DNA of 64,000 nucleotides, from assembly GCA_026770705.1 (NCBI GenBank), contig JANJGN010000071.1, forward strand, positions 186,001 through 250,000, in the 5' to 3' direction. The stretch is from Isurus oxyrinchus (Eukaryota). The notes under the pieces were generated by a model that saw nothing but the letters and a program-made list of their open reading frames with translations, made no database searches and was not told the origin of the DNA. This document shows, one piece after another, positions 1-37,748 of this stretch; the stretch's first letter is position 1, and the number at the start of each line of letters is the position of its first letter. The translations under genes and the position numbers were made by a program.

Positions 1-435
1 GAGGTCAGGTTGGACAGGTTAGGCTTGTATCCACTGGAGTTTAGAAGAGTAAGAGGCAACTTAATTAAAACCTTTAAGATCCAGGTGAGTCTTGACAGGG
101 TGGATATGGAGAGGATGTTCCCTCTTGTGTGAGAATCTAGAACTAGGCGGTCATGGTTTAAAAATAAGGGGTCGCTCATTTAAGATAGAGATGAGGCGAA
201 ATGTTTTCTCTCAGAGGGTAGTAAGTCTTTGGAACACTCTGCCTCAAAAGGCAGTGGAAACAGGGTCTTTGAATATTTTTAAGGCAGAGCTAGATAGATT
301 CTTGATTAACAAGGGGGTGAAAGGTCATTGGGGGTAGACAGGAATGTGAGGTTGAGGTGACAATCAGATCAGCCATGATCTTACTGAATGGCGGAGCAGG
401 TTCGAGGGGCTGAGTGACCTACTCCTGATCCTAAC
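1..435 (+). mobile_element. CR1-type LINE 3' fragment
   Basis: RRNVFSQRVVSLWNTLPQKAV...FKAELDRFL ORF2 C-terminus followed by the typical 3' tail. Confidence 0.8.
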
Positions 436-1689
436 TCAGATATCCAGATGTTCTCAAAGGCAATTGGGGATGGGCAACAAATACTGGCCTAGCCAGTGAC
501 ACCAACATCCCTGAAATGAATAAGAAAAAAATGTATCAATCAATTAAATTTATTGATTAATCGAATCGAAATTCCTCCAGCTGCTGTGGTGGGATTTGAA
601 CCCGTGCCTTCAAAGCATTCACCTGGGCCTCTGGATCACTGGCCTAGTGCCATTCCCATTGTGCGACTGTCTGCTATCATCATGGCTCTTTCACATCGAT
701 GTGGAAGTCCTGATAACAGAAGCATTGGACGAGGTACAGAAAGGTGACAAATCAGGAGCTCCATTGCTCAATATGAACGGATAATAAAGATAAATGAACA
801 TAAACCTTCCAGTCGCTAATTAGGGAGTCACTGTGGAGCCCATGAGTCCCTCGCAGCGCTATTGCAACCGTCTGGATCCCCAGTAGGGGACTCGGGGTGC
901 AGCTGTGTCTTCCTCATCATTTGGAAAAGCCGGAATTGTTCAGGTGCCCCTTCAAACAGGCCTACGAGTGCAGTGGGTGATGTCTCCCACAGGCCCTGGG
1001 AGACCTCCCCTGCCAATTTGTTTTGTAGCTTATTCTTCAACTGCGACATTGGATCAGCTTGAAAAAGGGTGGGGCTGAGGCAATACCACCAGGTAAGCGT
1101 CTATCCCCTCACACGTCACCCCCCCCCCCCCCACCCCCGTGACCATCACAGTCCCTCCCATCGTGCTGGAGGAGCATAATGTGCACATTCCCCTCCTTCC
1201 AATCAGTCTCCTCCCTTCCTCTCTAATCCTTGATCTTATTGTGTTCGGGGTTGACATCCCAGTCCTCCTCCCTAGACTGTCTGATGTTGACATCCCAATG
1301 CCCCATGTAGACCTGACCTCTCTCCAACTAGAGGCCCATTGTACTGTGACTTACAGAGACCACCGGCCCCCCTCGATTCTCACCCCCACCCCTACTCTCT
1401 ATATTACCTGCTCCCCACTGACAGGCTGCAGATGCCTCCCCTGACTGGGATTGTGCCACCTGCGGCCTAGTATCAAGCCCCCACCCCCAGGACCGACGTG
1501 TGTGAGGGACTGACCACGTCACTCATACCATGCTGGGCACGACCAACCCAGGACTGCCAGGCTCTCCCCACCACACTGGACTGGGACTAGAATAGGCGTG
1601 CCAAGCACAGCTCTCTAAATCGTGGCGCAGACCCACAGCACTCGCAATGTTTTGTGGCCCGAATCCTTGCTGAGGAACTGCCCAGCACT

Positions 1690-1790
1690 AAAATCAAAAC
1701 AACTGCAGATGCTGGAAATTCAAAACAGAAACAGAAACAGAAATACCTGGAAAAACTCAGCAGGTCTGGCAGCATCGGCGGAGAAGAACT
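1690..1790 (-). mobile_element. Penelope terminal fragment
   Basis: Matches about 31560-31655 (CCTGGAAAAACTCAGCAGGTCTGGCAGCATCGGCGGAGAAGAA). Confidence 0.6.
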
Positions 1791-2172
1791 GAGGTAGTGC
1801 GGCACTGTCGGAGGTTCAGTACTGAGGGAGTGCTGCACTGTCGGAGGGTCTGAGCTGAGGGAGTGCTGCACTGTCGGAGGGTTTGAACTGAGGGAGTGCT
1901 GCACTGTCGGAGGGTTTGAACTGAGGGAGTGCTGCACTGTCGGAGGGTCTGAACTGAAGGAGTGCTGCACTGTCGGAGGGTCTGAACTGAGAGAGTGCTG
2001 CACTGTCGGAGGTTCTGAACTGAGGGAGTGCTGCACTGTCGGAGGGTTTGAACTGAGGGAGTGCTGCACAGTCGGAGGGTCTGAACTGAGGGAGTGCTGC
2101 ACTGTCGGAGGGTTTGAACTGAGGGAGTGCTGCATTGTCGGAGGGTCTGATCTGAGGGAGTGCTGCACTGTC
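1788..2172. repeat. 33-bp minisatellite (ACTGAGGGAGTGCTGCACTGTCGGAGGGTCAGT-type)
   Basis: About 11 units. Same family at 15997-16289, 18389-18685, 27380-27620, 36857-37748, 53232-53460 and 56098-56348. Confidence 0.9.
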
Positions 2173-2903
2173 TAAAGAACATTGTACAAATTGCACAAAA
2201 TTTCATCTGATGCCTGTGTCTCATGCTAACATGAAGTTCATGCACACAACAGGAATATTTCTCGCTGTTTCTCTGCAGCAAGACAGCTTTGGTATCACAC
2301 CACCCACTGGCAAGAGTGTGCAGTTACAATGTGACATGTTTACATTGGAAATTTCTATTATAAAGATGGACAGAGGAATTCATCTGATTGGAAAACGTGA
2401 CAACAGGAAGCTATGTCTTTGAGCCAAGTATTTTGCAGCAAAACAAGAATTTTAATCTTTAAATATCTACAGAACAGGCTGAGCATTTTAATCACTTGAG
2501 TTAATCAAAGTAATTTTATTCATAAGCCAAATGCTTCTTACAATCTATCGCAGCATGAAAAAGGTGCAGCATTCAGAAAGCACATTCCAATCAGAGAACA
2601 GAGTTTAGCAACGTCACATTTCTGTTCATTCCTATTCGATGAACAATTTCAAAAGGAAATTGGACGGAAATTGGAAATAAATTTGCAGGGATACGGGGAT
2701 AGAGCAGGGGATGGGACTGAGTGGATTGCTTTACAGAGAGACAGCATAGACTCAATGGGCCAAATGTCCTCCTCCATTGCTGGAATGACTCGATGATACG
2801 GAGATGATTATAACCAGGACACTGACCAGTTTCATTACAACTTAACACAACATCACACGTTATTTGTCCGCACTGACTGACCAGATTGTTGCTGTACAAA
2901 GCT

Positions 2904-3043
2904 TCAAACAGTCTGTCGACTTCCTTTCACTGTTTGTCTCTCCCAGACACAGACTCCAGTGATAGTGATAACCACAGCCACAAGGAATATCACAGCTCGT
3001 ATTCCCAGGATCAGGATCACGTGCAGAATCTCTCCTCCACTGT
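2904..3043 (-). CDS. Gene C terminal exon: Arg-containing TM with short tail (activating type)
   Basis: Polypyrimidine-TAG acceptor, phase 1. (D)SGGEILHVILILGIRAVIFLVAVVITITGVCVWERQTVKGSRQTV*. No Tyr in the tail. Confidence 0.8.
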
Positions 3044-4164
3044 CTAGAGAACACACAGAAAGAAATCATCACTGACTCTCCACTTTCAATCTCTCACTCT
3101 GGCTGAACAATCAAACTTCATATCACTGCAACATTTGCTGTAATATTGACCCATCCACTGGGATTCAATGTGGAATGAATGTTTTCATTGTAAACACTCT
3201 AAGAGTGGACAATCGGAACTTTCCCCTTAGCGTGGAACATTGGTGAGAATGGATCATTGTGCTGTTGGACTCCCTGTCCAATGTTTCTCTCTATTGCTGT
3301 GTACAGGATTGTGCTGTAGAAAATTCTGGAAACGTTTAGTGCCGGGTGAAAATCCATCTCGGACGTGTGTGCGAATCGGGCAGGATCGAGATGGACTCCC
3401 CCACGGACTTACACCCCCCGCTTAATAAACAGTTCCAATCTTTACCCAGAGAGAGGGGAGAATGTGGAACTCGCTCCCACAGGGAATGGTTGAGGTGAAT
3501 AGTAGGAAATTAGGAAGTGAAATTGCTTGAAAAGCTTGGAGATGCAAGGGTTAAGTGTGACCGTGCCACCACTGGTGGGAGAGTGTAACTACAGCGTGAC
3601 GTTTACATAGGCAATCCCCATTATGAACAAGGACATTGGACATCATGTGAAAAATGGGCACTGGAAAGCTGAGAACTTGATGTAAGCTTTTCACCAACAG
3701 GAATTCCCTTCCTAAACCTCTCCACTTTCCTCTTACTCTCAAATACTCAAACAAAATTTCACACAAAATCACGTAAGGAGGAATTGGGACAGGTGACTGG
3801 TCAAAGAGTTAGATTTCAGGAAGGTTCTTAAAGGAGGATAGAGAGTTGGAGAGGCAGAGAGTGTCTGTGAGTAACTCTGTGCATCTGAGTGTCTGTAATA
3901 GACTTTGCAATTTCCATATTCTTCCATAAATATGAAAGGGAACACAAATCCCAGAATCCAGGTCAACTCACCGGTGCAGCACTGAGGGAGGTCAGGTAAT
4001 CCACAGGGGAGTATGTGCTAGTGTGTTTGTTTGTGAGTGTGTCTTTGTGTGTGCTCATAGATGTGAGATTGTGTGTCTGCAGGTGTCGATATAAGGCTGT
4101 ATATTTATGTGTGTTGTTGTAGTGTTTCAATCTGAGAGAGATGTTGAAGTTTGTCTTAACTAAC

Positions 4165-4315
4165 GTTCCACAGTGATGGTTATGAACCCCTCCACTGCTC
4201 CATGTTCATTCACTGAGCACACTGATAGTCTCCAGTGTCCCTGGATGTAACGTGAGGAATCACCAACCACAGCTCATTGTTGGAACTTGTTCTGTTCATT
4301 TAATATTCAGATGTC
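4165..4315 (-). pseudogene. Gene C truncated C2 exon remnant
   Basis: Only the 3' half of the 282-nt exon remains, with a 1-nt deletion near 4212. The 5' half is replaced by unrelated sequence. The homologous upstream intron resumes at about 4500. Confidence 0.8.
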
Positions 4316-4638
4316 AGGACCGGACTCAACAAGACAGATTGCAGGTTTACCAACAGAAAGTGAACAACAATTTATATTCAAAGGGAAGAGAGTGCTGGTT
4401 AATCAGCAAGTGGTCACTGATTGGAGGAGGTGTTGCCATGGAAAATAATGTGTGTGAAATGTAAAGTTTAGACAGCTTGTCTCTTCATTCAGCAACAATC
4501 AAATAAAGATCAGTTAACTTCTATCGACTGTGAAGCACTTTGAGAGGCATGAGAATGTGGACACTGAGAACGGGCTGCACTGTCAGAGGGTCAGCGCTGA
4601 GGGAGTGCTGATGTAGAATGAAGGGTGTCCGTACTTAC

Positions 4639-4935
4639 CTTGCACAGTTAGTACGAGGGTCCGCTCCGATGAAACAGATGGATATCTCACTCTGCAGCTG
4701 AGAGTGTGTCCGTGGTGTTTGAGTGATGGGATCAGGGTCAGAACAGAAGTATAGGTCAGAGTGACACCATGCTGAGTTACAGTGTTTGAGACTGATCCAC
4801 GTACGTCAGTGGGAGTGTCCCAGGTTAAGACAGGTGCTGCTGTTCCATTGCACGTTGTGTTGAAGGTGCAGCTTACATCCACACGCTTTCCTGCAATAAT
4901 TTCAGCAGGGAATATTGTGGGTTTATCTGTGAAAT
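4639..4935 (-). CDS. Gene C second Ig exon (open, but within a probable pseudogene)
   Basis: 297 nt, AG/GTAAGT, open. Confidence 0.8.
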
Positions 4936-5663
4936 CTAACAGACAGAGAATGGATCCTTTTAGAGAAATATAACGTGAAGCATCAGTTCAAATAGAAATC
5001 ACAGTCCCACAAGAAAAAGCACTTTTACAAGGATGATATCAGATCTAACAGATTACAATGATCAGGAGAGAATTTCCTGCTTTGAGACTTTGGTATTTCT
5101 GTCTCTCAGCTTAATACACGTTCACTCCGAGACACTTGAACTGATAATAGTGGGTGAGGGTGAAGGAGCAGACCAGAGTTTGGAGTGCACTACCCCATCA
5201 TTCACTCAGCAATCTGGGCCATTTATTACTTTGCAATTTGTGGGAGCTTGCTGTGCACAAATTGGCTGCTGTGTTTCTCACATTACAACAGTAACTACAA
5301 TTCAGGAATCAGCTCATTGGCTGTGAAGTGATTTCGTCCGTGGTGAGGTGGTGAAAGGTGCTACAGAAATGTGAATCTTTCTTCTGTCGATATGTCAGAC
5401 TTCAAGACAGGATTAGAGAGATCGATGGGAGTGGATAACCTGATAACATTGATGGACACAGTCAATACATTTAATCATTGTCATTAAAGTGAGTATTAGA
5501 GGTTGCTTTAGGACTGAACTGGAAGCTATCACCAGGTTATTGAGAATCAGACAGTGTGTTATAATAAGCTGTGTTTTGTGTTAATATGTAAACGTCACAG
5601 ATTGTGTTATTTCCCATTGAGTGTTGGATGTGAATTGATGAGTAATTATAACACAGCACTTAC

Positions 5664-6032
5664 CAGAAACGTGAAGCTGGGTTACAGGGTAATAGTTATG
5701 GCTCAGACCATTGTCAAATTCTATTCTGAAAAAATAAGGTCCTGCATCTTCCCGTCTGATGTTGTTTATAATCAGGGAACAGTCGCCATGTTTCAGGTCT
5801 CCAGACAGCCGGGTCCGATTGTGGAAACGTGGTAACTCATGACTGTGATCCTTGGAGTGAAAGGCAATGGGAGCCCAGGGAATCTGTTCCTCATTATTAA
5901 ACCAGACTCCACCTCGCGGTTGGTTTTCCAGACACGATGGATAACTGTAATGACATGGAATCTGTACACACGAACCTTCCTGCGCTGTCACCTCTCATGG
6001 AGTGTCACCTTTCCACTCTTGTGACAGTCCAA
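5664..6032 (-). pseudogene. Gene C V exon with premature stop (CGA to TGA)
   Basis: 369 nt. GDTP*EVTAQ with TGA at 5995-5997 where paralogues have CGA. Otherwise open and close to the gene B V exon. Confidence 0.85.
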
Positions 6033-6139
6033 CTGGGGAGAGAAATATCAATATTTAACTCTGAATGTTTTCTCAATCCACTAGACTCAATATCCACCCC
6101 CTCCATCACTGGATGGTTTGTGGATCCACTAGACTCAAA

Positions 6140-6920
6140 ATTTACAGATGAGGCTGAATTGGGGGGATGGTCAATACTGAGGAGAATGGCAACAAATTAT
6201 ATTGGCAGGAAGAATAGAAAAACAGAATATTATTTAAATGGAGACAGGCTGCAGAATGCAGTACAGAGGGATCTGGGTGTCCTTGTACATGAATCACAGA
6301 AAGTCAGCATTCAGGAACACCACGGAATGAGGAAGGCAAGTGGAATGTTGGCCTTTATTGCAAACGGATGGAGTAGAAAAAGGAGGGAAGTCTTGCAACA
6401 GCTGCACAGGGTGAGATTCTATCAGGAGCAGTGTGTACAAGCAGTTCAGAGAAGCTTCACTGGGCTGATTCCTGGGATTAAAGGGTTTGTCCTGTGAGGA
6501 AATGTTGAGCAGGTTGGGCCTGTATCCATTGGAGTTTAGAAGAATGAGGAGTGACCTTATTGAAACATATCCGATTCCGAGGGGGCTTGACAGGGTGGAT
6601 GCTGGGAGGATGTTTCCCCCTCGTGGGGGAATCTAGAACCAGGGAGCACAGTTTCGAAATGAGGGCTCTCCCATTTAAGACTGAGATGAGGAGGAATTTC
6701 CTCTCTCAGAGGGGCGCTAGCCTGTGGAATTCTCTTCCCCAGAGAGCAGTGGAGGCTGGGCCATTGAATAGACTCAAGGCTGAGTGAGGCAGGTTTTTGA
6801 TCGACAAGGGAGTCAAGGGTTTGGGGGACAGGCAGGAAAATGGAGTTAAGGCCACAACCAGATCAGTGAGAGCAGGCTCGAGGGGCCGAATGGCCTGCTC
6901 CTGTTCCTATTTCTTATGAT
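6140..6920 (+). mobile_element. CR1-type LINE fragment
   Basis: YYLNGDRLQ...QRDLGVLVHES; RRNFLSQR...WNSLPQRAV; 3' tail. Confidence 0.8.
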
Positions 6921-7479
6921 CCTACATTCTTACCATCTTAAAATATTAAAGCTGCAGAATAAACATGCAAGTGACTGACCCGCTCGACCCACCTTCCATC
7001 TGGGGGACCCATGGGGAGGACCCTTCCTGAGCCAGGTCCACCAGCCAACATGGTCTGGATCCGAGCACAGGAGACACGGTGGGGAGTGACTAACAGGCTC
7101 CTTGTGACAGGCCCCGTCTGTCCAATGGCTGGCTTTCAGCTGCCAAGGCCAGAGTGGTCCTTGCTAAAACCAGCTCAGGACTGGCCAGGACCCCTGTGCA
7201 GACCCCCTCCAGCGCTGCAGCCTCTGTACAAACCCCTCATGCGCTTGTGGAGAGACACAAACAAGGCTGCACATTACCGAGGAGAATCCCCTCTACGGAC
7301 TAAGGGGCTGACTCATCACCTTAAACTCAGCAAATGAGGAGGCTCTCGCTCGGTATCGGGGCTTGGCATTCGCTCAATAAAAATAATCAAATGACATTTT
7401 GGTCAGAAATCTAAGGAGGTTGTACATTCCCTCTAAAATAAGAATCAATCTGGGGTCGAGGGTCAAAGGGCAACAACTT

Positions 7480-9410
7480 ATATGTGCACAACAACTTTAA
7501 CATGACAAATCACCCCAAGGTGCTATACAGGAGCGTCATAAAATAAAGTATGTCACCCAGACACATGTGGAGATATTAGCGACAGCTGGCCAGAAGATGT
7601 CGGTGTTATGGAGAATCTTAAAAGGGTGATGAAATGGATAGTGAGAGAGAGAGAGATAGAGATAGAGAGAGTAAGAGAGAGGGATGGAGAGGGGTTGAGG
7701 GAGGGTATTACAGAGCTCAGGCCCCAGGCAGCTGAAGGCATGGCCACCGATGTTAGAGTGATGCGATCGGGGGATGGTCAAGAGGCTGGAATTGGAGAAG
7801 CGCAGAGACCTCAGAGGGTTGGAGAGGCTGGAGGAGGTTACAGAGATAGGGAGGTTTATAGGGGCTGGAGGATGTTACAGAGATAGGGAGGGTTGGAGGG
7901 GCTGGAGGAGTTACAGAGATAGGGAGGGTTGAGGGGCTGGAGGAGGTTACAGAGATAGTGAGGGTTGTAGTGATTGGAGGAGTTACAGAGATAGGGATAG
8001 TTGTAGGGGCTGGAAAAGTTAAGAGAGATTGGGAGAGTGTAGGGTCTGGAGGAGATTACAGAGACAGTGAGGGTTGTAGTGATTGGAGGAGTTACAGAGA
8101 TAGGGATAGTTGTAGGGGCTGGAAAAGTTAAGAGAGATTGGGAGAGTGTAGGGTCTGGAGGAGTTTGCAGAGGTAGGGAGGGTTGTAGTGACTGGGGCAG
8201 GTTACAGGGGCAGGGAAAGTCGTCGGGACTGGAGCAGGCTACAGTGATAGGGAAGCTTTTAGGGGCAGGAGGAAGTTACAGAAATAGGGAGGTTTGTAGT
8301 GGCTGGAGGAGGTTGCAGAGATTGGTAGGTTTGTTGGGCAGGATGAATTTACAGATATAGGGAAGCGGTAGAAGCTTCAAGAGGTTACAGAGAATGGGAT
8401 GGTTGTAGGTACTGGAGGAGGACGAGGAGATTACAGGGATAATGAGGAAACAAAGATGAAAATTTTGACATTGAGACTTTTCTTGACCAGGAGCCAGTCT
8501 CGGTCATCGAGCAGAGCGGGTGATAAGGGAATGGGACTTGGTATGAGTAAGGACGTGGTCAGCAGTTTTGGATGGCCTCAAGTTTATGGAGTGTAGAGCG
8601 TGTGTTGGAACAGTCGAGACTGGAGGTAATGAAGGCGTGGATGAGGGTTTCAGCAGCAGACGAGCTGAGACAGGGTGAAGTCTTGCGATGTTACGGAGGT
8701 GGAAATAGACGGTATTAGTGAGGGCACAGATATGAGGCCGGAAGCTCATCTCAGGATCAAATGGGACAACAAAGCTGTGAACAGATTGGCTTCAATCTCA
8801 GAGAGCTGCCAGGGAGAGGAATGGAGTTGGTAGCGAGGGAACAGAGTTTGGAGCGGGGAATGAAGACAATGGCTTCAGTCTTTCCAATATTTAATTGGAG
8901 GGAATTTCTGCCCATCCAGTACTGGATGTCGGATAAGCAGCCTGATAATTTAGCAGCAGTGGAGGAGTCGAGAGAGGTGGTGGTGAGGTAGAGCTGGGGA
9001 TCCTCAGTGGACAGGTGAAAACTAACACTGTTCAGATGATGCTGCAAAGCCATTGCAAGTGATTCTCTGGCTACGATGAGATGGATAAGAATGGAGCCAG
9101 GGGAGAGCAGTCCCACCCAGCTGGACGACAGTGGAGAGATGTTGGAGGAGGATGGTGTGGTCGAGCGTGTCAAAGGCTGCAGACAGATCGAGAAGGACGA
9201 GGAGGGAAAGTTGACATTTGTCACAGTCACACAGGATGCCATTTGTGACCTTGATAAGAGCTGTTTCAGCACAGTGGCTGGGGTGGGAACCTGATTGGAG
9301 GGATTCAAACATGGAGTTCCGGGAAAGATGGGAACGGATTCGGGAGATGGAAACACGTTCAAGGACTTTGGAGGGGAAAGAGAGGCTGGAGATGGGACGG
9401 GGGTTTACAC
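7480..9410 (-). mobile_element. L2-type LINE fragments interrupted by a minisatellite
   Basis: RPISSLSFPSKVLER...QSG...ETALIKVTN...LLVLLDLSAAFDTLDHTILL; LQLNIGKTEAI; YFHLRNIARL. Confidence 0.75.
7800..8440. repeat. Purine-rich minisatellite of about 37 bp
   Basis: GAGATAGGGAGGGTTGTAGGGGCTGGAGGAGGTTACA-like units. Confidence 0.75.
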
Positions 9411-9676
9411 GGACAGTGTGAGGTGTGGAAGGTGTAGTGGGGAGGAGACACTTCACTCAGGTGGGAGGTGTCATTACCCCTCAGCTCGGTTTACGTTACA
9501 GCTATGATGTGGATTCAATCACACACAATAAGCTCATGGATCTGGGAGCAGAAATAGAAAAATCATTAAAAATAGTGACGCTGGTTAACACGGCCAAAAA
9601 ACAAGCAAATCAAACATTATTATTTCCCATTGAGTGTTGGATGTGAATTGGTGAGTAATTATAACACAGCACTTAC

Positions 9677-10054
9677 CAGAAACGTGAAGCTGGGTTACAG
9701 GGTAATAGTTATGGCTCGGACCATTGTCAAAATCTATTCTGAAAATATAAGTTCCTGCATCTTCCCGTCTGATGTTGTTTATAATCAGGGAACAGTCGCC
9801 ATCTTTCAGGTCTCCAGACAGTCGGGTCCGATGGTGGAACTGTGGTAACTCGTGACTGTGATCCTTGGAGTGAAAGGCTACAGACCTTTTAGAATATTTG
9901 TTCCGTATGTACCTTCTCATATACCAGATTCCGACATGTCATTTCTTTGCCAAATCTGATGGATAACTGTAATGACATGGAATCTGTACACACGAACCTT
10001 CCTGTGCTGTCAACGCTCGTGGAGTGTCACCTTTCCACTCTTGTGACAGTCCAA
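9677..10054 (-). pseudogene. Divergent Siglec-like V exon with in-frame stop
   Basis: 378 nt, intact splice sites. ...YSYPSDLAKK*HVGIWYMRRYIRNKYSKRSVAFH...YIFRID. TGA at 9939-9941. Confidence 0.82.
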
Positions 10055-10274
10055 CTGTGGAGAGAAATATCAATATTTAACTCTGGATGGTTTGTAGATC
10101 CACTAGACTCGATATCCACACTCTCCATCACTGGGGCACAGTGGCTGCAGTGTGGACCATCTGTAGGACACACAAGGAACTCCCCAAGGTTTCACAATGG
10201 ATGGAAGAGAATCCTGGACACAGGAGTGGACTAGTTCATTCTACATTGGCTCATGGTCCTCAGGACCCTGTTTG

Positions 10275-11980
10275 TGCACAAGCCTGCTATCCAACAGAAC
10301 TGAAGTTGGGGAAAATCCATTTGGAATTCCACTGTCCAGGGCATTGTGTTAACTTGCTGAGTTTGTTTTAAATCTAACATCTATTTTTGGTCTGTTGCCT
10401 TAAAGGGAGTGTAACTGGGAGTCAGGTTAATTAGGAATTTTAGGAGTTATTATAGCAGTCATTGTAGTCTTATGTATGTGCTTGAAATCTTTTATTTTGA
10501 TGACAAATATTTTACTTTATTGTTTTAAATCTGTAAAGTTCTTGGTGGAGTTATTGCTTCTGAATTCAGTGCACACATCTCATAATAAATACAAATTGCA
10601 AAATCATTATGATCATGTGACCACCTTTCTGTCAGGGACTTGGTCTGCCTGGCACACATCACCTGCCAAGTGATAACACTGTTGTAAAATGCCTTTCAGG
10701 GACAGCAGCATGACATCACTCGAGGGGAAGTGCGTCATGTGATTTTTAGGAAATGGAGTTGGCTTAAGTAAGTTCGATGTGTATTTGTGTGTGTTAGGCA
10801 TAAGGTCTATCTTTAAGTTCAAGTTTAGTTTGTATTTCTGTATTTGGGTGTTTAGAAAAGGGGGAACTTGACTTAAAAAGAAGCCAGCATTCCACTGAGG
10901 TTTTATGTCTCTTGAAGGGAAGTCAAGAGAAATACAAGGTGTAAGAAACTGTGCTGTTGCCTAGCAACAGTGATCCAGAGGGAAAGACCCACAGAGACAG
11001 AGAAAAACAGAAAAGTACTTTCAGTTCTGTTGAAAGGAGTTGCCAGGAGAAGCAGCAAAGGAGCGGGACAGATAGTCAGTCCCAAAGTAAAGAAGAAGCC
11101 AAAACCATCGAGTGGAACAGGAGAAAGGGTCCAAGAAAACCTTCTAGTCAAATCTGGAAAAGGCCCTGTTAAGTGAAGTTAAGAGTGAGGAGCAGAAGAA
11201 GGCTTCAAGCATAAAGGGAGAAAGCAGCAGGACACAGACCTAAAGCAAAATAGGCTTGTGAGAAGCCAGAAGATCCTAGGAGACACCACAGGTTGGTGAC
11301 TCATTACTACGGCCATGTGAAGCCATGGTGTTCCATTGACACGGCTGAGCATTGGAGAGACAGGGCGTGGAAGGAAGGCTGAATGCACGTGGCGATCCAG
11401 GGGGCAGGAACATGGGAAGGAGAGTTTGAAATAGTGAAAGTGGACCCTTGTGGAAGGTGTCTGAGTGAAAGTGTCATGTTGGAGAAGATTCCAAAGCGTG
11501 TCCTTGAAGAGTGGATACTGGAAACCCTCATATGGATATCTCAGTTCAGTGAGACTGGTTGGCTCACAGTGTAACAAGCGTCTGGGGTCAGATGAGGAGG
11601 GAGACATAGAATTTGTTTCAAGTGGGTTCTTTCAATTGCTTTAAGAGTGTGGTGTCCCTGACCACAGGTCGTCTATTGGTTTACATCGACTGTGTACTTA
11701 GTGTGAACATGAGAGTATAAGATAGTTATTGTAACTTGTGTTCTACTTATGAATCTGTAAAGGTATAGGTCTGGCTGAAGGAGTAATGTAATATAGTCTG
11801 TCTTTCCTAGTTTAATAAATGTTTTATTCCTTTGTTAGAATCTCATCAGATGACTCCTGTGACTCTGTTCAGTAGCCACACTCCACATTCCAAAATAAAA
11901 AATAAAATTAGGACCTATCAAGCTGAGTTCCACCCTGGGATCTGACTTGCCCAGTAGTAACATCAGCTGGGATGATAACA
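10275..11980. mobile_element. Unclassified LTR-like repeats (related to 25504-26395 in inverse orientation)
   Basis: 10290-10680 resembles the reverse complement of 25504-25920. TG...CA-type ends and AATAAA. No coding homology seen. Confidence 0.4.
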
Positions 11981-13600
11981 CCATCCAGTCCAAGTTTCAC
12001 TTTGGCCTGTGAGCAGAACACAGCTCACACAGTTTGGCTGCAGGTGTCTCCCAGCTTTCTATCCTTGTATATCTGTTCTCATGTCCCTGTTCTAAATAAA
12101 TGAACCCACAATGTATTTACCCAATTCCGTATCAGTGGCTGGTGCCTTTATATCATTATAAAAACACAACATGGTGATCAGCGGTGGTCAAACATTCTGG
12201 CAGCAAGATTCAGTACAGGTATGACGTGGTGAACAGCCTGAGATCGAGCTACATGACATGAGACGACCCTCGATGCATTGGTCAGACCACAACAGAGACA
12301 CAGCATCAGAGAGGGTTGAAATCGCAGTGTACTGACTGCTCAGGAAACCTTTGAAGACACAGTGACGGGAAAGAGCTCAAGTAAAGAGCTGGGGAGCAGA
12401 CGGATCCCTCGTGGTGAGATTACAGCACACGGCCTGTAGGTCAGTGAGTGGGACAGTGTGTATCGCCAGGACCAGCAGCGGGTTAGCTCAGTCAGGGAAG
12501 GCGAGTGACCAGGGTGTGGGCTGGATCGATAGTGAGCGAGGGAGAGTCAAACACACAAAAACCATTATAAAAATCAGCCCAGCGAAGTTAGTGATTATAA
12601 CGGGCGGCTTCGAGATTGCTGAACAGCAAATTGAATAAAAAACAAAGACTCCATTACTCCGTGGTGTGTTCCTGCCACAACCCGTCTCCGTGGGCGGAGC
12701 TTCGGAAAAGCGCACGAAAGGGGCTAAAGCGACACTCATCCCAGATCCTGCAGGAGAAGGAAGGTCAAAGGAATATTGTCAGAATGTCCACGAAATTCCC
12801 CAGTTTGAACTGGGATGTAGCTGACCGACTATCTGAATTCAGAATGTTTAAACAGCGTACAGGGCTGTGGTTTCCTGATTCAGCTGTGACTGAACCAGAC
12901 GAACAAGCCATAAAAATTCACCTCGCGATTGGAAATGAAGGTCTACACAGGCTGAACACATCAGGATTAACAGCAGAAGAGCGAAAGGATCCCCAATAGA
13001 TATGGACGATATTGGAAGACAGGTTCAGAATCAGGTGAAACTCCATATTCATCAACTAGAGTTTATGTCATTTCATCAGCCTACACAATCCATAAACCAC
13101 TTCATCAGCCGATGTAGAGAAAAGGGTACGCACTGTGATTTCAAACACAGAGCCTGCAGACAGAGTTGTTGAGTTGGTGATCGCATCCACACCCATGGAA
13201 GCCTTCCAGAAAGATCTGCTAGATAAGACCAAAACCTATAGCATTGAAGAGCTACTCAAGGATGGACATAAATACGAAGTGATCCTCGCAGGTCAACGAA
13301 GCTTACAGGTCCTCAGTACAACATAAGTTGTTGACACACTCACTAGAACATCCAAACCTAGTGAGACGTGTGGAAGGTGTGGCCTTCTGCAGGCACCAAG
13401 GAAATGCCCAGCTTTCCACCAATCCTGCAAGGCTTGTGGCAGAAAGGGCCATTGATAGCGGCAGGGTACTAGAGCAAAGGCTGATGCAGCTACAAAGAGC
13501 CGTGCACTGATCCAAACAGACCCTACACAACGGGGAACCTTCAAGCAATAAGAATGACCATCCCCTATCCCATCAGGAACATTTACATGTGGTGACTGAC
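11980..13600 (+). mobile_element. Degenerate Ty3/Gypsy LTR retrotransposon (LTR end and gag remnant)
   Basis: ...CACAACA|TGG LTR/PBS-like junction at 12171. Gag-like LNWD...FRMFKQR...LAIGNEGL and paired zinc knuckles CGRCG...CPAFHQSCKACGRKGH*, with stops. Confidence 0.65.
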
Positions 13601-15344: not shown

Positions 15345-15384
15345 CTTGGAGAAGTGACAGGAGGAAGTAAGATTTCCCGATCAT
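15345..15384 (-). CDS. Gene C signal-peptide exon (MIGKSYFLLSLLQ)
   Basis: Same coding sequence as leader 43346-43385. Flanks about 14540-15640 are homologous to the gene B repeat unit. Confidence 0.75.
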
Positions 15385-15915: not shown

Positions 15916-17376
15916 GTAAACTTGTTGCTGTAACTGCCTCTTTTGTTTCATTCAGCTGAATCTTCAGCTCTTTAGGCTATTCCTTTTATCTCTTGGGTCA
16001 GTACTGAGGGAGTGCTGCACTGTCGGAGGGTCAGTACTGAGGGAGTGCTGCACTGACAGAGGGTCAGTACTGAGGGAGTGCTGCACTGTCAGAGTGTCAG
16101 TACTGAGGGAGTGCTGCACTGTCAGAGGGTCAGTACTGTGGGAGTGCTGCACTGTCAGAGGGTCAGTACTGAGGGAATGCTGCTGTCGGAGGGTCAGTAC
16201 TGAGGGAGTGCTGCACGGTCAGAGGTTCAGTACTGAGGGAGTGCTGCACTGTCGGAGGGTCAGTACTGAGGGAGTGCTGCACTGTCAGAACTGCCGTAAT
16301 TCAGATGATGTTTGAAATTAGCAACATGCCTCGTGTAACAATCTATATCATCAGCTCAATATAAATAGATTAGTCCTGTACGTTTCACTTTACTGCAAAT
16401 TGTTCATGGTTTCATTTCCTTGTTAACCAGGCTCATGTGATGACTATTTTTAAATAATGTTTGTTATTTGGAACAAGGGGCCATGCCTGAACAGATAACT
16501 GTCGGATCAAGCAGCTGGGTTTTTTCTTGAACCTGGCTTCATTCAGATGTTTGCTGCTGGACATGAGATCATTAATGTGTGAATGTAGAATCGGAGTCAC
16601 CTCAGTGAACAGCAGCATTGGTTAAACAGCCTGATCTGCAATAAGAACTGCTGAACACAATGTCCATTCAGAACAGCTCGGTCCCCGATCAGAGAAACAG
16701 CCTCAGACAGAACCAACTGACGCTGGAATCCATACAATTCATCAACGTGTTGGGAGTTAGTTTGATGTCGGAGATGGAGTGTTACTGGGAAGGATGGAAC
16801 CCGTCAGGATGAACAGCTCGATGTACGACAAGGAAAGGATGAGCTAAGAGGGGTTGGTCACGGACAGACGGAGCGTGTGAAGACTCAACAAGCTAATGGC
16901 AGGTGAAGAGCTGGAAAGGTGTCTTTTCAACACAAGGTTTAGACACAGAACTCGATGTTTGATCGGGTATTTCAAACAGAGAAACTCTTTACAGGGTGAA
17001 TGGACCTTGTCAATAATCCATCCAGCCAACCTCGCCTGGAGATTAGTCCAATATTAGACACTAAACCGAGACCCCCGTCTGCCCTCTCGGGCGGGTGTGA
17101 AAGATCCCACAGCCACTATTTGGAGGAAGAGCAGGGGGGAGATCTCCCCGGTGTCCTGGCACCAATATTTATCCCTCAACCAACATCACCAAAAACAGAT
17201 GATCACATTGCTGTTTGTGGGAGCTTGCTGTGCGCTAATTGGCTGCTGCGTTTCCTACATTACAACAGTAACCACACTTCGAAAAAAGGGTGTACTCAAC
17301 TGTAAAGTGTTCTGGGACATCCAGAGACCATGCTGTACAGAAGAGATTTGACAGGAGCAGCAAGTGTTTTACTTAC

Positions 17377-25500: not shown

Positions 25501-26666
25501 CCCTGTGACATGACATGGCAGATGATGTGTGCTTGGTGCTCCAAATCCACAAGGGAAAATTGGTCACGCTATCACAATAGTTTTGTAATTTGTATTTATT
25601 ACAAGAAGCGTGCACTGAATTCAGGAGTAATGAGTTGACCACAACCTTTAGAGATTTTAAAAATTGGATTAAGATATTTATTAACAAAATAAAAGATTTC
25701 AAGCACAGACATAATACCACGGTTAGTTACAGCTAAAATAAATTCTCAAATTCCTAATTAACCTGACTCCCAGTTACAGAGCCCGTTTAAGGCAACAGTC
25801 CAAAATAAGATTTTAGATTAAAAACAAGCCCAGCGAGTTAACACAGCACACACTTGACACTGGAAATCTAAACGGGTTTCTCCAACTTTATTTACTGAAC
25901 ATAACAGACTTATGCACAAATGCCTGGAGGCTTCTTCAAGCCTGTTTCACACACTCCTGTTAGATCTTACATGGCCCCCAACATAGCCTTTCATTCTCCT
26001 TTATACATGTTTCTCTCTCTTTGATGTGTAAATTCTTTGGAACTGTACCTTTCCCATAATATAAACTTTCATGTTGCCAATATTGTCAATGAAGTTTGGG
26101 TAAAATTAAAAAAAAACTCCTTAGCTTTGCTTATTGGGCTTGTCCTAAACAGACCAACATCCCTTTGAAATCTAAACAACCCCTTCACACCTTACATGCT
26201 AACACAGCCTCCATGTGTTCTCATTAGCATTTCAAGTACATTTCTACATCTAGCTTCTTTTGATAATCTCAAGCTTGAAGTCTACCTGACTCCAGATGTA
26301 ATTAAACTACACAGACAGACCCATCTACACTCACACCCATAAACCTTGTTTACAACAAACCAGGAAAATATTAAGCAAATTATTATACTTTCGCACCACC
26401 CCTGATTCCCATTGACTCCAGTTATGCTCGGGATCCTAGAGGCCACACTCGGTCAAATGCAGCCTTGATGTCAAAGGCAGTCACTCTCACCTCACCATAC
26501 ATAATTCATAAGCTTCTCGCCATCTTTTACAGCATGGAAAAAGGTGCAGCATTCAGAAAGCTCACTCAGAACCAATAAAAAAAGTTCAGCAACATCATAT
26601 TTCTGTTCATTACTATTTGGCCATGTTGGCTGCACACACCCCACAGCCCCGCTCCCTGTTTCACAC

Positions 26667-29977: not shown

Positions 29978-30743
29978 CTAAAAACATAGAAAGATTTTAA
30001 TGTGAGCAAATATGGTGCACAGCAAGACTCCATGCATCATCTCTCTGTATCTGATGTCTGAATGCATTTCCAGGTAACTTCCCTCACGATAAGGTCTTAT
30101 GGCACATTTATAATTGACACTGCCTATGTAAACTGTCACACTGCAGTTGCATTCTCCCACCAGTAGAGGTGTTGTCCATCTAGAATGAAAGAAGCTTGCT
30201 TTCACATCCTCAGGATTTCGCAAAGGGCTGGACAGGCAATGATTGTTTTTGATTGATGGAGCACTTAGGGATAAATCTACAATTCTCTGTTCAGGCGGTT
30301 GCTCATCCAACTCAGGGTCTTGTTCATCTGGAGTTTACCTTCCTTCAACACAGAATTGGAGCTGACACCGAGATTCCAGTGCAGCCCTGAGAGAGGACAC
30401 GGAACTCACATGTGTGTATGTGTGTATGTGTGTGTTTGTGTTTCTGCACAGGTGAGTGTGCTTGTGTCTGTATGCACACATGTAGCTGTGTGTGTGCATG
30501 CGCGTGTGTCTGTGTGTCTACGTCTGTCCATGAGTGAGAGTATGTGCATGTGTGTGTCTATGTGTGGGCATGAATATGTGTGTGTTTGAGATGGGTGTGT
30601 ATTTTCCTGTGTATGTGTTTGTACGTGTATGACTGTCTGTGAATACTTATGCATGTGTATGCTTACACATGTGTGTGTGTGTGTGTATGTGTCTGTGTGT
30701 GTGTGTGTGTGTCTGAGTGATGTTGAAGTTTGCATTAACTCAC

Positions 30744-31025
30744 GTTCCACAGTGATGGTTATGAACCCCTCCACTGCTCCATGTTCATTCTCTGCCACAC
30801 ACTGATAGTCTCCAGTGTCCCTGGATGTAACGTGAGGAATCACCAACCACAGCTCATTGTTGGAACTTGTTCTGTTCATTGGGACATTAAGATGTCGCCA
30901 CGTCAGGTTAGAAGCTGGGGAGCTCTCGACAGAGCAGATTATCACTGCAGAATTCCCCTCAATTACATTGATCGATGAAGCGTTAATCATATCAAGAGAA
31001 GTAATTGATAGGTTCCGTGGTGCAT
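30744..31025 (-). CDS. Gene B repeated C2 Ig exon 4
   Basis: 282 nt, TAG/GTGAGT, open. Confidence 0.88.
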
Positions 31026-36724: not shown

Positions 36725-36856
36725 CTAAAAACAAATAAAAATCAGTTAACTTACATTGACTTTGAAGCACTTTGAGAGACACTGAGAATGTGAAAGGTGT
36801 GATATCAATGTCGGTTCCTTCACCACAAAGCACGTAATCCAGGCACACACTTCAGT

Positions 36857-37748
36857 TCAGTACTGGGGGAGTGCTGCACAGTCAGAGGGTCAGCACTGAG
36901 GGAATGCTACCCCGTCAGAGAGTCAGTACTGAGGGAGTGCTGCGCTGTCAGAGGGTCAGTACTGAGAGAGTGCTACACTGCCAGATGGTCAGTACTGAGG
37001 GAGTGCTGCACTGTCGGAGGGTCAGTACTGAGGGAGTGCTGCACTGTCGTGGGGTCTGGAATGGGGGAATGTCAGTACTGAGGGAGTGCTGCACTGTCGT
37101 GGGGTCTGGAATGGGGGAATGTCAGTACTGAGGGAGTGCTGCACTGTCGGAGGGTCAGTACCTAGGGATTGCAGCATTGTCGGTGGGTCAGTTCTGCGGG
37201 AGCACTGCACTGTCAGGTGGTCAGTACTGAGGGAGTGATGCATTGTCAGAGGGTCAGTAGAGAGATGGTGCTGAACTGTTGGAGGGTCAGTACTGAGGGA
37301 GCGCTACATTGTCAGAGGGTCAGTGGAGAGGTGGTGCTGAACTGTTGGAGTGTCAGTACTGAGGGAGCGCTACATTGTCAGAGGGTCAGTAGAGAGATGG
37401 TGCTGAACTGTTGGAGGGTCAGTACTGAGGGAGCGCTACATTGTCAGAGGGTCAGTGGAGAGCTGGTGCTGAACTGTTGGAGTGTCAGTACTGAGGGAGT
37501 GCTGCACTGTTGGAGGGTCAGTACCTAGGGATTGCAGCATTGTCGGTGGGTCAGTGCTGCGGGAGCACTGCACTGTCAGGTGGTCAGTACTGAGGGAGTG
37601 ATGCATTGTCAGAGGGTCAGTAGAGAGACGGTGCTGAACTGTTGGAGGGTCAGTACTGAGGGAGCGCTACATTGTCAGAGGGTCAGTGGAGAGGTGGTGC
37701 TGAACTGTTGGAGTGTCAGTTCTGAGAGAGTGCTGCACTGTCAGAGGT
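36857..37748. repeat. Long 33-bp minisatellite array with higher-order variants
   Basis: Direct inspection; produces 11-aa periodic ORFs. Confidence 0.9.

Follow-up and report, generated by a model that had tools for sequence, protein, structure and literature searches.

In a 64,000-nucleotide stretch of the genome of Isurus oxyrinchus, the whole of which is referred to here as the window, two Siglec-like genes, A and B, share the locus with a third copy, gene C, whose last exon is very probably real, spliced and a member of a conserved cassette of the activating type. Gene C is a two-Ig-domain Siglec-like gene made up of a leader, a V, a C2 and a transmembrane (TM) exon, and the segment 3043-2904 is its genuine last coding exon. 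The features of gene C are as follows, with the kind of evidence that identified each.

2450..2903 (2450 approximate), minus strand: 3' UTR of gene C (contigs, blastn)
2904..3043, minus strand: terminal coding (TM) exon of gene C (translation, splice joint, shark homologues)
3044..4638, minus strand: intron from C2 to TM exon, 1595 bases (GT at 4638-4637, AG at 3045-3044; joint found in three runs)
4165..4315, minus strand: dead 3' half of a stalk-type C2 exon, inside the C2-TM intron (blastn)
4639..4935, minus strand: C2-set exon of gene C (Pfam C2-set_2, E 2.6e-08; joints to the V and TM exons)
5664..6032, minus strand: Siglec-type V-set exon of gene C with the FFRIEF motif (Pfam V-set 2.7e-09, Ig_CD22 3.5e-09)
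15345..15384, minus strand: putative leader exon of gene C, MIGKSYFLLSLLQ, with a phase-1 donor (loose end in run X1)

The terminal exon and its membrane span

The TM exon is preceded on the minus strand by a pyrimidine-rich tract, tttctttctgtgtgttctctag, and by an AG at 3045-3044. It begins at 3043 with two bases that finish a split codon (phase 1) and fit the donor of the C2 exon, where 4639 is followed by GT; this donor reads caag/gtaagt and leaves one base over, which is compatible with the acceptor at 3043. The frame from 3043 translates to SGGEILHVILILGIRAVIFLVAVVITITGVCVWERQTVKGSRQTV, and the product runs in order through the linker SGGE, a hydrophobic span, a tail of 12 residues and the stop, a TGA at 2906-2904. 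The hydrophobic span, from Ile to Trp, is 29 residues long, and its sole charged residue is an Arg (codon 2999-2997) within the motif ILGIRA, with 10 hydrophobic residues before it and 18 after. Gene C therefore has the single basic residue inside the TM helix that is found in adaptor-coupled receptors, and its tail, ERQTVKGSRQTV, is short and devoid of Tyr (12 residues), as in activating receptors.

An initial annotation of this DNA had proposed a phase-correct acceptor followed by a span with an Arg and a Tyr-free tail of 12 amino acids, and both the sequence and its translation bear this out. Its remark that the open reading frame track misses the frame does not hold at a threshold of 50 amino acids, where the frame is listed as a GTG ORF of 50 amino acids at 2904-3056; the discrepancy is a matter of threshold only. 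A hydropathy scan of the three minus-strand frames across the 64 kb returned three non-repetitive segments of TM grade, namely the TM exons of genes C, A and B. When positions 1-12000 were compared with the window by blastn, no second copy of the TM exon was found, in keeping with the earlier observation that it is unlike the TM exons of A and B, and the segment 2640-4135 had no copy elsewhere in the window except for one weak match of 87 bases. The Pfam search with the TM exon peptide gave noise only (E > 0.2).

Layout of gene C

Pfam identifies a V-set/Ig_CD22 exon followed by a C2-set_2 exon, which is the domain composition of a Siglec. In mammalian Siglecs, the FRxE motif marks the F strand with the conserved sialic-acid-binding Arg. 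GPYFFRIEF is the sequence in the V exon of gene C, and it is shared by gene B and the Scyliorhinus canicula protein P0012, a likeness that concerns presence in the sequence only.

Downstream of the stop codon, the 3' UTR is covered by contigs at 2729-2917 (0 differences), 2607-2809 and 2413-2639. Its part 2903-2640 is found in gene C alone when compared across the window, 2636-2518 is homologous to the stretch 50-170 nt downstream of the gene B stop (blastn against 26497-26617), and an AATAAA lies at 2520-2515. The dead stalk fragment at 4315-4165 is about 92% identical to gene B's five stalk exons (blastn of 4136-4315 against 30715-30896 and four further copies); its 5' half and acceptor are gone, its frame is disrupted, and it is skipped in RNA.

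A further V-set exon copy, degenerate in sequence, is found on the minus strand at 9677-10054, after the leader (15.38 kb) and before the V exon that starts at 6032. It is 85% identical to the V exon of gene C, with gaps.

Splicing in public sequence runs

Four public runs from one organism were compared with positions 2400-6300 at a likeness of at least 97%. Of the words sampled from 2650-3100, 58-73% are present in the runs, whose contig totals of 48-93 Mb are transcriptome-sized; we infer from these totals and from the canonical joints, rather than from the record, that the runs are RNA.

The junction between 4639 and 3043 that the initial annotation had predicted was found exactly in contigs of three of these runs, X1, X2 and X5, which represent two samples and two studies. 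The joint skips 1595 bases and is bounded by GT..AG on the minus strand. A single X5 contig of 850 nt spans the 3' UTR, the TM exon (2882-3043) and the C2 exon (4639-4936), and a joint between the V and C2 exons (4935 to 5664) is present in X1 and X2. At the V acceptor, a loose end of 27 letters in X1 exactly matches the leader at 15345-15384, and equally matches two leader cassettes of gene B. Because the contig 2729-2917 passes the stop into the unique 3' UTR, the TM exon is the terminal exon. Intron contigs are present too, at about 2-10% of exon depth.

The C2 exons of genes C and B differ at 4916, 4800, 4722 and 4649. Among contigs on this exon the sole listed difference from gene C is at 4800, and with none listed at 4916, 4722 or 4649 the spliced RNA resembles gene C, not gene B. 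The possibility that the TM exon serves as an alternative end of gene B is thus unsupported, as no departure from gene C is listed for the contigs at 4916, 4722 or 4649. At 4800 all four runs have G on the plus strand and encode Pro, the residue of genes A and B. The C of the window encodes Arg (in TDVRGS); it is either a variant private to the assembled animal or a mistake in the assembly.

Within the TM exon, a T>C difference at 2960 (plus strand), which changes Thr to Ala in the context ITIT/AG, accounts for approximately 35-55% of the depth in one sample and for the entire depth in X5; most other sharks have Ala here. The long X5 contig also has 218 different letters instead of 2640-2881. 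The mixed state of 2960 and this divergence indicate that a near-identical second allele or paralogue adds to the signal, and part of the support for splicing may come from that allele or paralogue and not from the window locus itself.

Two further observations concern the V exon. At 5705, 5790, 5839 and 5889 all contigs aligned to the V exon of gene C have gene-B-like letters, which reflect either short contigs derived from gene B or gene conversion in gene C of the sampled animal. One X1 contig drops 70 bases within the V exon (5865-5936) at non-canonical GT..TT ends (minus strand), probably as an assembly artefact at a cluster of differences between genes C and B.

Homologues of the cassette in other sharks

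A phmmer search with the 45-residue TM peptide against 1.84 billion representative proteins gave nine matches, one of which (P0008) is a repeat artefact. The eight true matches, with E values of 3e-13 to 4e-5, are all from sharks and all aligned at the extreme C-terminus. Their carriers are a CD33-like protein, a Siglec-12 and an Ig protein of Scyliorhinus torazame, a Siglec-13 and a CD22-like protein of Chiloscyllium punctatum, a CD22-like protein of Hemiscyllium ocellatum, a sialoadhesin-like protein of Rhincodon typus and a SLAM family member 9-like protein of Mustelus asterias. No ray, chimaera, bony-fish or tetrapod protein was matched, which for a query of 45 residues is weak evidence of absence. 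A word-index search with residues 175-219 of P0001 yielded five candidates and added two proteins of S. canicula, P0011 and P0012. Both are intact and 272-273 amino acids long, are named Siglec-13 and Siglec-14 isoform X2, and have the order leader-V-C2-TM; their linkers start with VQ-D-SGGE (P0011) and VQ-Y-SGGE (P0012).

These matches bear on whether the TM exon could be a chance ORF or an unused pseudo-exon, given that it is short and lies in sequence without counterpart in genes A and B. Its exact canonical joints in three runs and its significant C-terminal homologues in sharks rule this explanation out, and we assign it a negligible probability.

Gene C and its homologues were compared exon by exon. 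The leader of gene C, MIGKSYFLLSLLQ, is identical to that of P0011. Against P0012, gene C is 80% identical in the V exon, 89% in the C2 exon and 79% in the TM exon, while its C2 exon is 91% identical to that of P0011 and its TM exon 82% identical to that of P0001. The C-terminal shark homologues of the TM exon range overall from 71 to 82% identity. The initial annotation had made its reading depend on conservation of the Arg and had suggested a search for intact paralogues: the Arg of ILGIRA is invariant in all ten homologues (10/10, from six shark species), and the protein search recovered the S. canicula Siglec-13/14-like proteins as intact examples of the same build. The tails of the homologues are 5-12 residues long and Tyr is absent in every one. 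The shark Arg-TM cassette consists of a linker, a helix with the ILGIRA Arg in its outer half, and a Tyr-free tail of 5-12 residues.

Intact proteins of the gene C build in other sharks are already known as automatic RefSeq predictions. Our literature search found no paper on shark Siglec pairs or describing the S. canicula Siglec-13/14-like proteins. In P0003, the C. punctatum Siglec-13 and an intact six-domain carrier of the cassette, the sequence is YYFKVEF, with Lys in place of the sialic-acid-binding Arg.

The ectodomains of the CD22-like and SLAM-like carriers differ from gene C in Pfam architecture and do not resemble it significantly in sequence (E > 0.6), and the cassette that these receptors carry is 58-78% identical to the gene C copy, and 58-75% identical over 36 residues. 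With a shared cassette on unrelated ectodomains, the TM exon behaves as a reusable module. A broader interpretation is that sharks possess a lineage-specific, portable Arg-TM cassette that was exon-shuffled onto at least three unrelated families of Ig receptors (CD33-like and single-V Siglecs, CD22-like receptors and SLAM-like receptors), turning inhibitory receptors into activating ones. We regard this as a serious possibility with slightly less than an even chance of being correct.

Genes A and B and the proposed origin of gene C

The features of genes A and B that bear on gene C, and the repeat arrays of the region, are listed below.

58560-58441, minus strand: TM exon of gene A, uncharged (hydropathy scan)
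28906-28787, minus strand: TM exon of gene B, uncharged (hydropathy scan)
26915-26667, minus strand: tyrosine-tail exon of gene B, LFYANI...TEYAQI
55955-55707, minus strand: tyrosine-tail exon of gene A, copy 1, LLYANP...TEYTQI
53086-52838, minus strand: tyrosine-tail exon of gene A, copy 2, LLYANP...TEYAQI
1785-2172 and about ten others (e.g. 15995-16289, 36855-37747, 53230-53477, 56099-56351), both strands: tandem arrays of a 33-base repeat, PTVQHSLSS in one frame, across the Siglec cluster

The TM exons of genes A and B are without charge and their tails are of the ITIM/ITSM type, a design predicted to be inhibitory, and gene C, next to genes with such tails, has the build of the activating partner in a pair. 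In both tail copies of gene A the membrane-proximal LLYANP has Pro at +3 and is not a canonical ITIM; the corresponding motif of gene B is LFYANI.

Nucleotide identity to gene B is 94.6% in the V exon and 98.7% in the C2 exon of gene C, and the introns flanking these exons reach about the same level. Within the C2 exon, 4 of 297 bases differ from gene B and 6 of 297 from gene A. On the simplest interpretation, gene C would have arisen from a gene-B-like copy that lost everything from mid-stalk exon through the ITIM exon and received a foreign segment bearing the TM exon in exchange. It would have kept the B-type 3' end, and the inserted block would be the stretch of about 1.5 kb that has no counterpart elsewhere in the window. 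The edges of the block 2640-4135 are a truncated stalk exon on one side and a B-type 3' UTR on the other, and resemble those of a replacement or recombination event. Several contigs diverge precisely at 2639/2640, which is an edge of the TM-exon block.

State of the gene C copy

The C2 and TM exons of gene C are open. The gene as a whole is not intact, as its V exon has an in-frame TGA at 5997-5995, at about codon 12, where genes A and B read Arg (CGA in gene B). The assembled allele of gene C is consequently unable to make a receptor, and the initial annotation was right to say cautiously that gene C encodes or encoded one.

Whether this extends beyond the assembled allele is a separate matter. 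Gene C could be a transcribed pseudogene, dead in the species, whose TM exon is intact since inactivation was recent; we consider this only a little less probable than not. The TGA falls 12 codons within the V exon, the dead stalk fragment at 4315-4165 and the degenerate V copy at 10054-9677 denote a rearranged locus, and the S. torazame model P0001 likewise lacks the first part of its V domain. Additionally, no contig with another letter at 5997 is listed, with X1 and X2 having depth in the bin and coverage of the site itself being unproven. Against a pseudogene, the gene C transcript is abundant relative to the intron signal in X1 and X2, and the stop is a single change of the CpG type that may be an allele of the sequenced animal. 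The Thr to Ala variant of the TM exon at 2960 is moreover expressed in the same sample, and an intact allele or paralogue may exist. A pseudogene would in any case bear on the gene C copy, not on the nature of the TM exon.

Proposed coupling to an adaptor

The initial annotation concluded that gene C encodes or encoded an adaptor-coupled activating Siglec. The activating build is supported by splicing of the TM exon to Ig exons, by the invariant Arg, by the Tyr-free tail and by the ITIM/ITSM neighbours; of the adaptors it named, DAP12, by analogy with Siglec-14, is the less likely one for gene C. By analogy with known receptors, the cassette of gene C probably couples to an adaptor, and the chances that this adaptor is of the FcR-gamma/zeta type are about even.

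The proposed mechanism is that the buried Arg would block stable surface expression unless it pairs with the two Asp residues of an ITAM adaptor dimer. Since the ectodomain of gene C is near-identical to that of the inhibitory gene B (V 95%, C2 99% at the nucleotide level), binding of ligand would activate; the cell would be activated by ligand engagement of gene C and inhibited through genes A and B.

A receptor with a TM Arg and a short tail might instead be a non-signalling form, without any adaptor, that acts as a ligand decoy against the inhibitory partner or is unstable or retained in the ER. A charged residue within a helix can serve as a signal for ER retention or degradation, and the charge in this helix is a possible signal of that kind; the tail has no signalling motif, and among homologues it can be as short as 5 or as long as 12 residues. 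That ILGIRA and the helix around it stay invariant in at least three receptor families and at least two shark orders would be hard to account for unless they had a specific partner within the membrane, and makes a non-signalling form improbable.

The choice of adaptor, if gene C is coupled as we propose, turns on the residue and its position. [quoted passage not shown] Swapping Lys and Arg lowers adaptor assembly several-fold; with a Lys-to-Arg exchange, assembly of KIR with DAP12 falls to 15% (PMC1440944). The identity of the residue, Arg in every copy, and its N-terminal position, with just 18 hydrophobic residues after it, would favour an adaptor of the FcR-gamma/CD3-zeta type over DAP12.

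Coupling to DAP12 or DAP10, as for mammalian Siglec-14, -15 and -16, is unlikely by comparison with what is known of those receptors. DAP12 is the adaptor that mammalian activating Siglecs use (PMC7226832), it is also bound by rodent Ly49 receptors that have a TM Arg (PMC1440944), and in a helix that starts at the Ile after Glu the Arg would come eleventh among 29 residues, near the centre. The 18 hydrophobic residues after the Arg, on the other hand, place it in the outer third of any helix of 21-24 residues. Arg is present in 10/10 homologues and in the window copy, never Lys, and phmmer revealed no similarity to any mammalian Siglec TM. As to the adaptors themselves, a survey from 2014 did not find FcR-gamma in sharks (PMC4016189), and our search of the literature on DAP12 and FcR-gamma in elasmobranchs found nothing specific.

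Significance

Fish have been described as being without CD33-related inhibitory Siglecs, in a literature centred on teleosts (PMC7226832), and one survey places the origin of FcR-gamma and its receptors with bony fish (PMC4016189). The shark locus has Siglec-like genes with ITIM/ITSM tails beside a copy with a conserved, RNA-spliced anchor of the activating type. It moves the paired-receptor design, and probably ITAM-adaptor coupling by a buried Arg, into cartilaginous fish. Should the portable-cassette interpretation be true, paired activating and inhibitory Siglecs arose independently in cartilaginous fish, by way of an adaptor of the FcR-gamma/zeta type and not DAP12. One anchor on unrelated ectodomains would also be a natural example of activating partners obtained by a single-exon swap. 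The value of the gene C copy itself is limited by its stop codon and by the presence of similar genes for other sharks in RefSeq.

Comparison with known systems

The closest counterparts of gene C are the S. canicula Siglec-13/14-like proteins, which have in common with it the order leader-V-C2-TM, the exon junction, the ILGIRA Arg and a tail that is short and lacks Tyr. Unlike gene C, whose V exon has a nonsense codon and whose tail is 12 residues long, the S. canicula proteins are intact, and their tail of 5 residues closes with ERRTV.

In mammals, Siglec-5/14 and Siglec-11/16 resemble the relationship of A and B to C, in that an inhibitory ITIM/ITSM Siglec has a near-identical neighbour with a basic TM and a short tail. 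Siglec-15 has two Ig domains, as does gene C. Mammalian activating Siglecs use DAP12 or DAP10, with a TM Lys in Siglec-15 (PMC7226832), whereas the invariant Arg of gene C sits within the outer half of its span. The homology and the central basic residue that characterize the TM of mammalian DAP12-coupled Siglecs were not found in gene C, as the phmmer matches were from sharks only and the Arg is in the outer half. With no TM similarity found, the gene C exon falls outside the TM lineage of mammalian activating Siglecs, and to judge from these comparisons its activating TM is independent in origin from theirs.

Fc-alpha-RI, LILRA, GPVI, NKp46 and OSCAR have an N-terminal TM Arg and a very short tail (PMC1440944), as does gene C. 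The ectodomains of these FcR-gamma-coupled Ig receptors belong to another family than that of gene C, and the likeness found is one of build. The activating KIR of macaques are thought to be recombinants with a foreign TM and tail on a KIR3D ectodomain, and bind FcR-gamma, not DAP12 (PMC8102735); this logic of a swapped cassette matches the apparent origin of gene C. Set beside LILRB/LILRA and Siglec-5/14, gene C looks like the activating half of such a pair.
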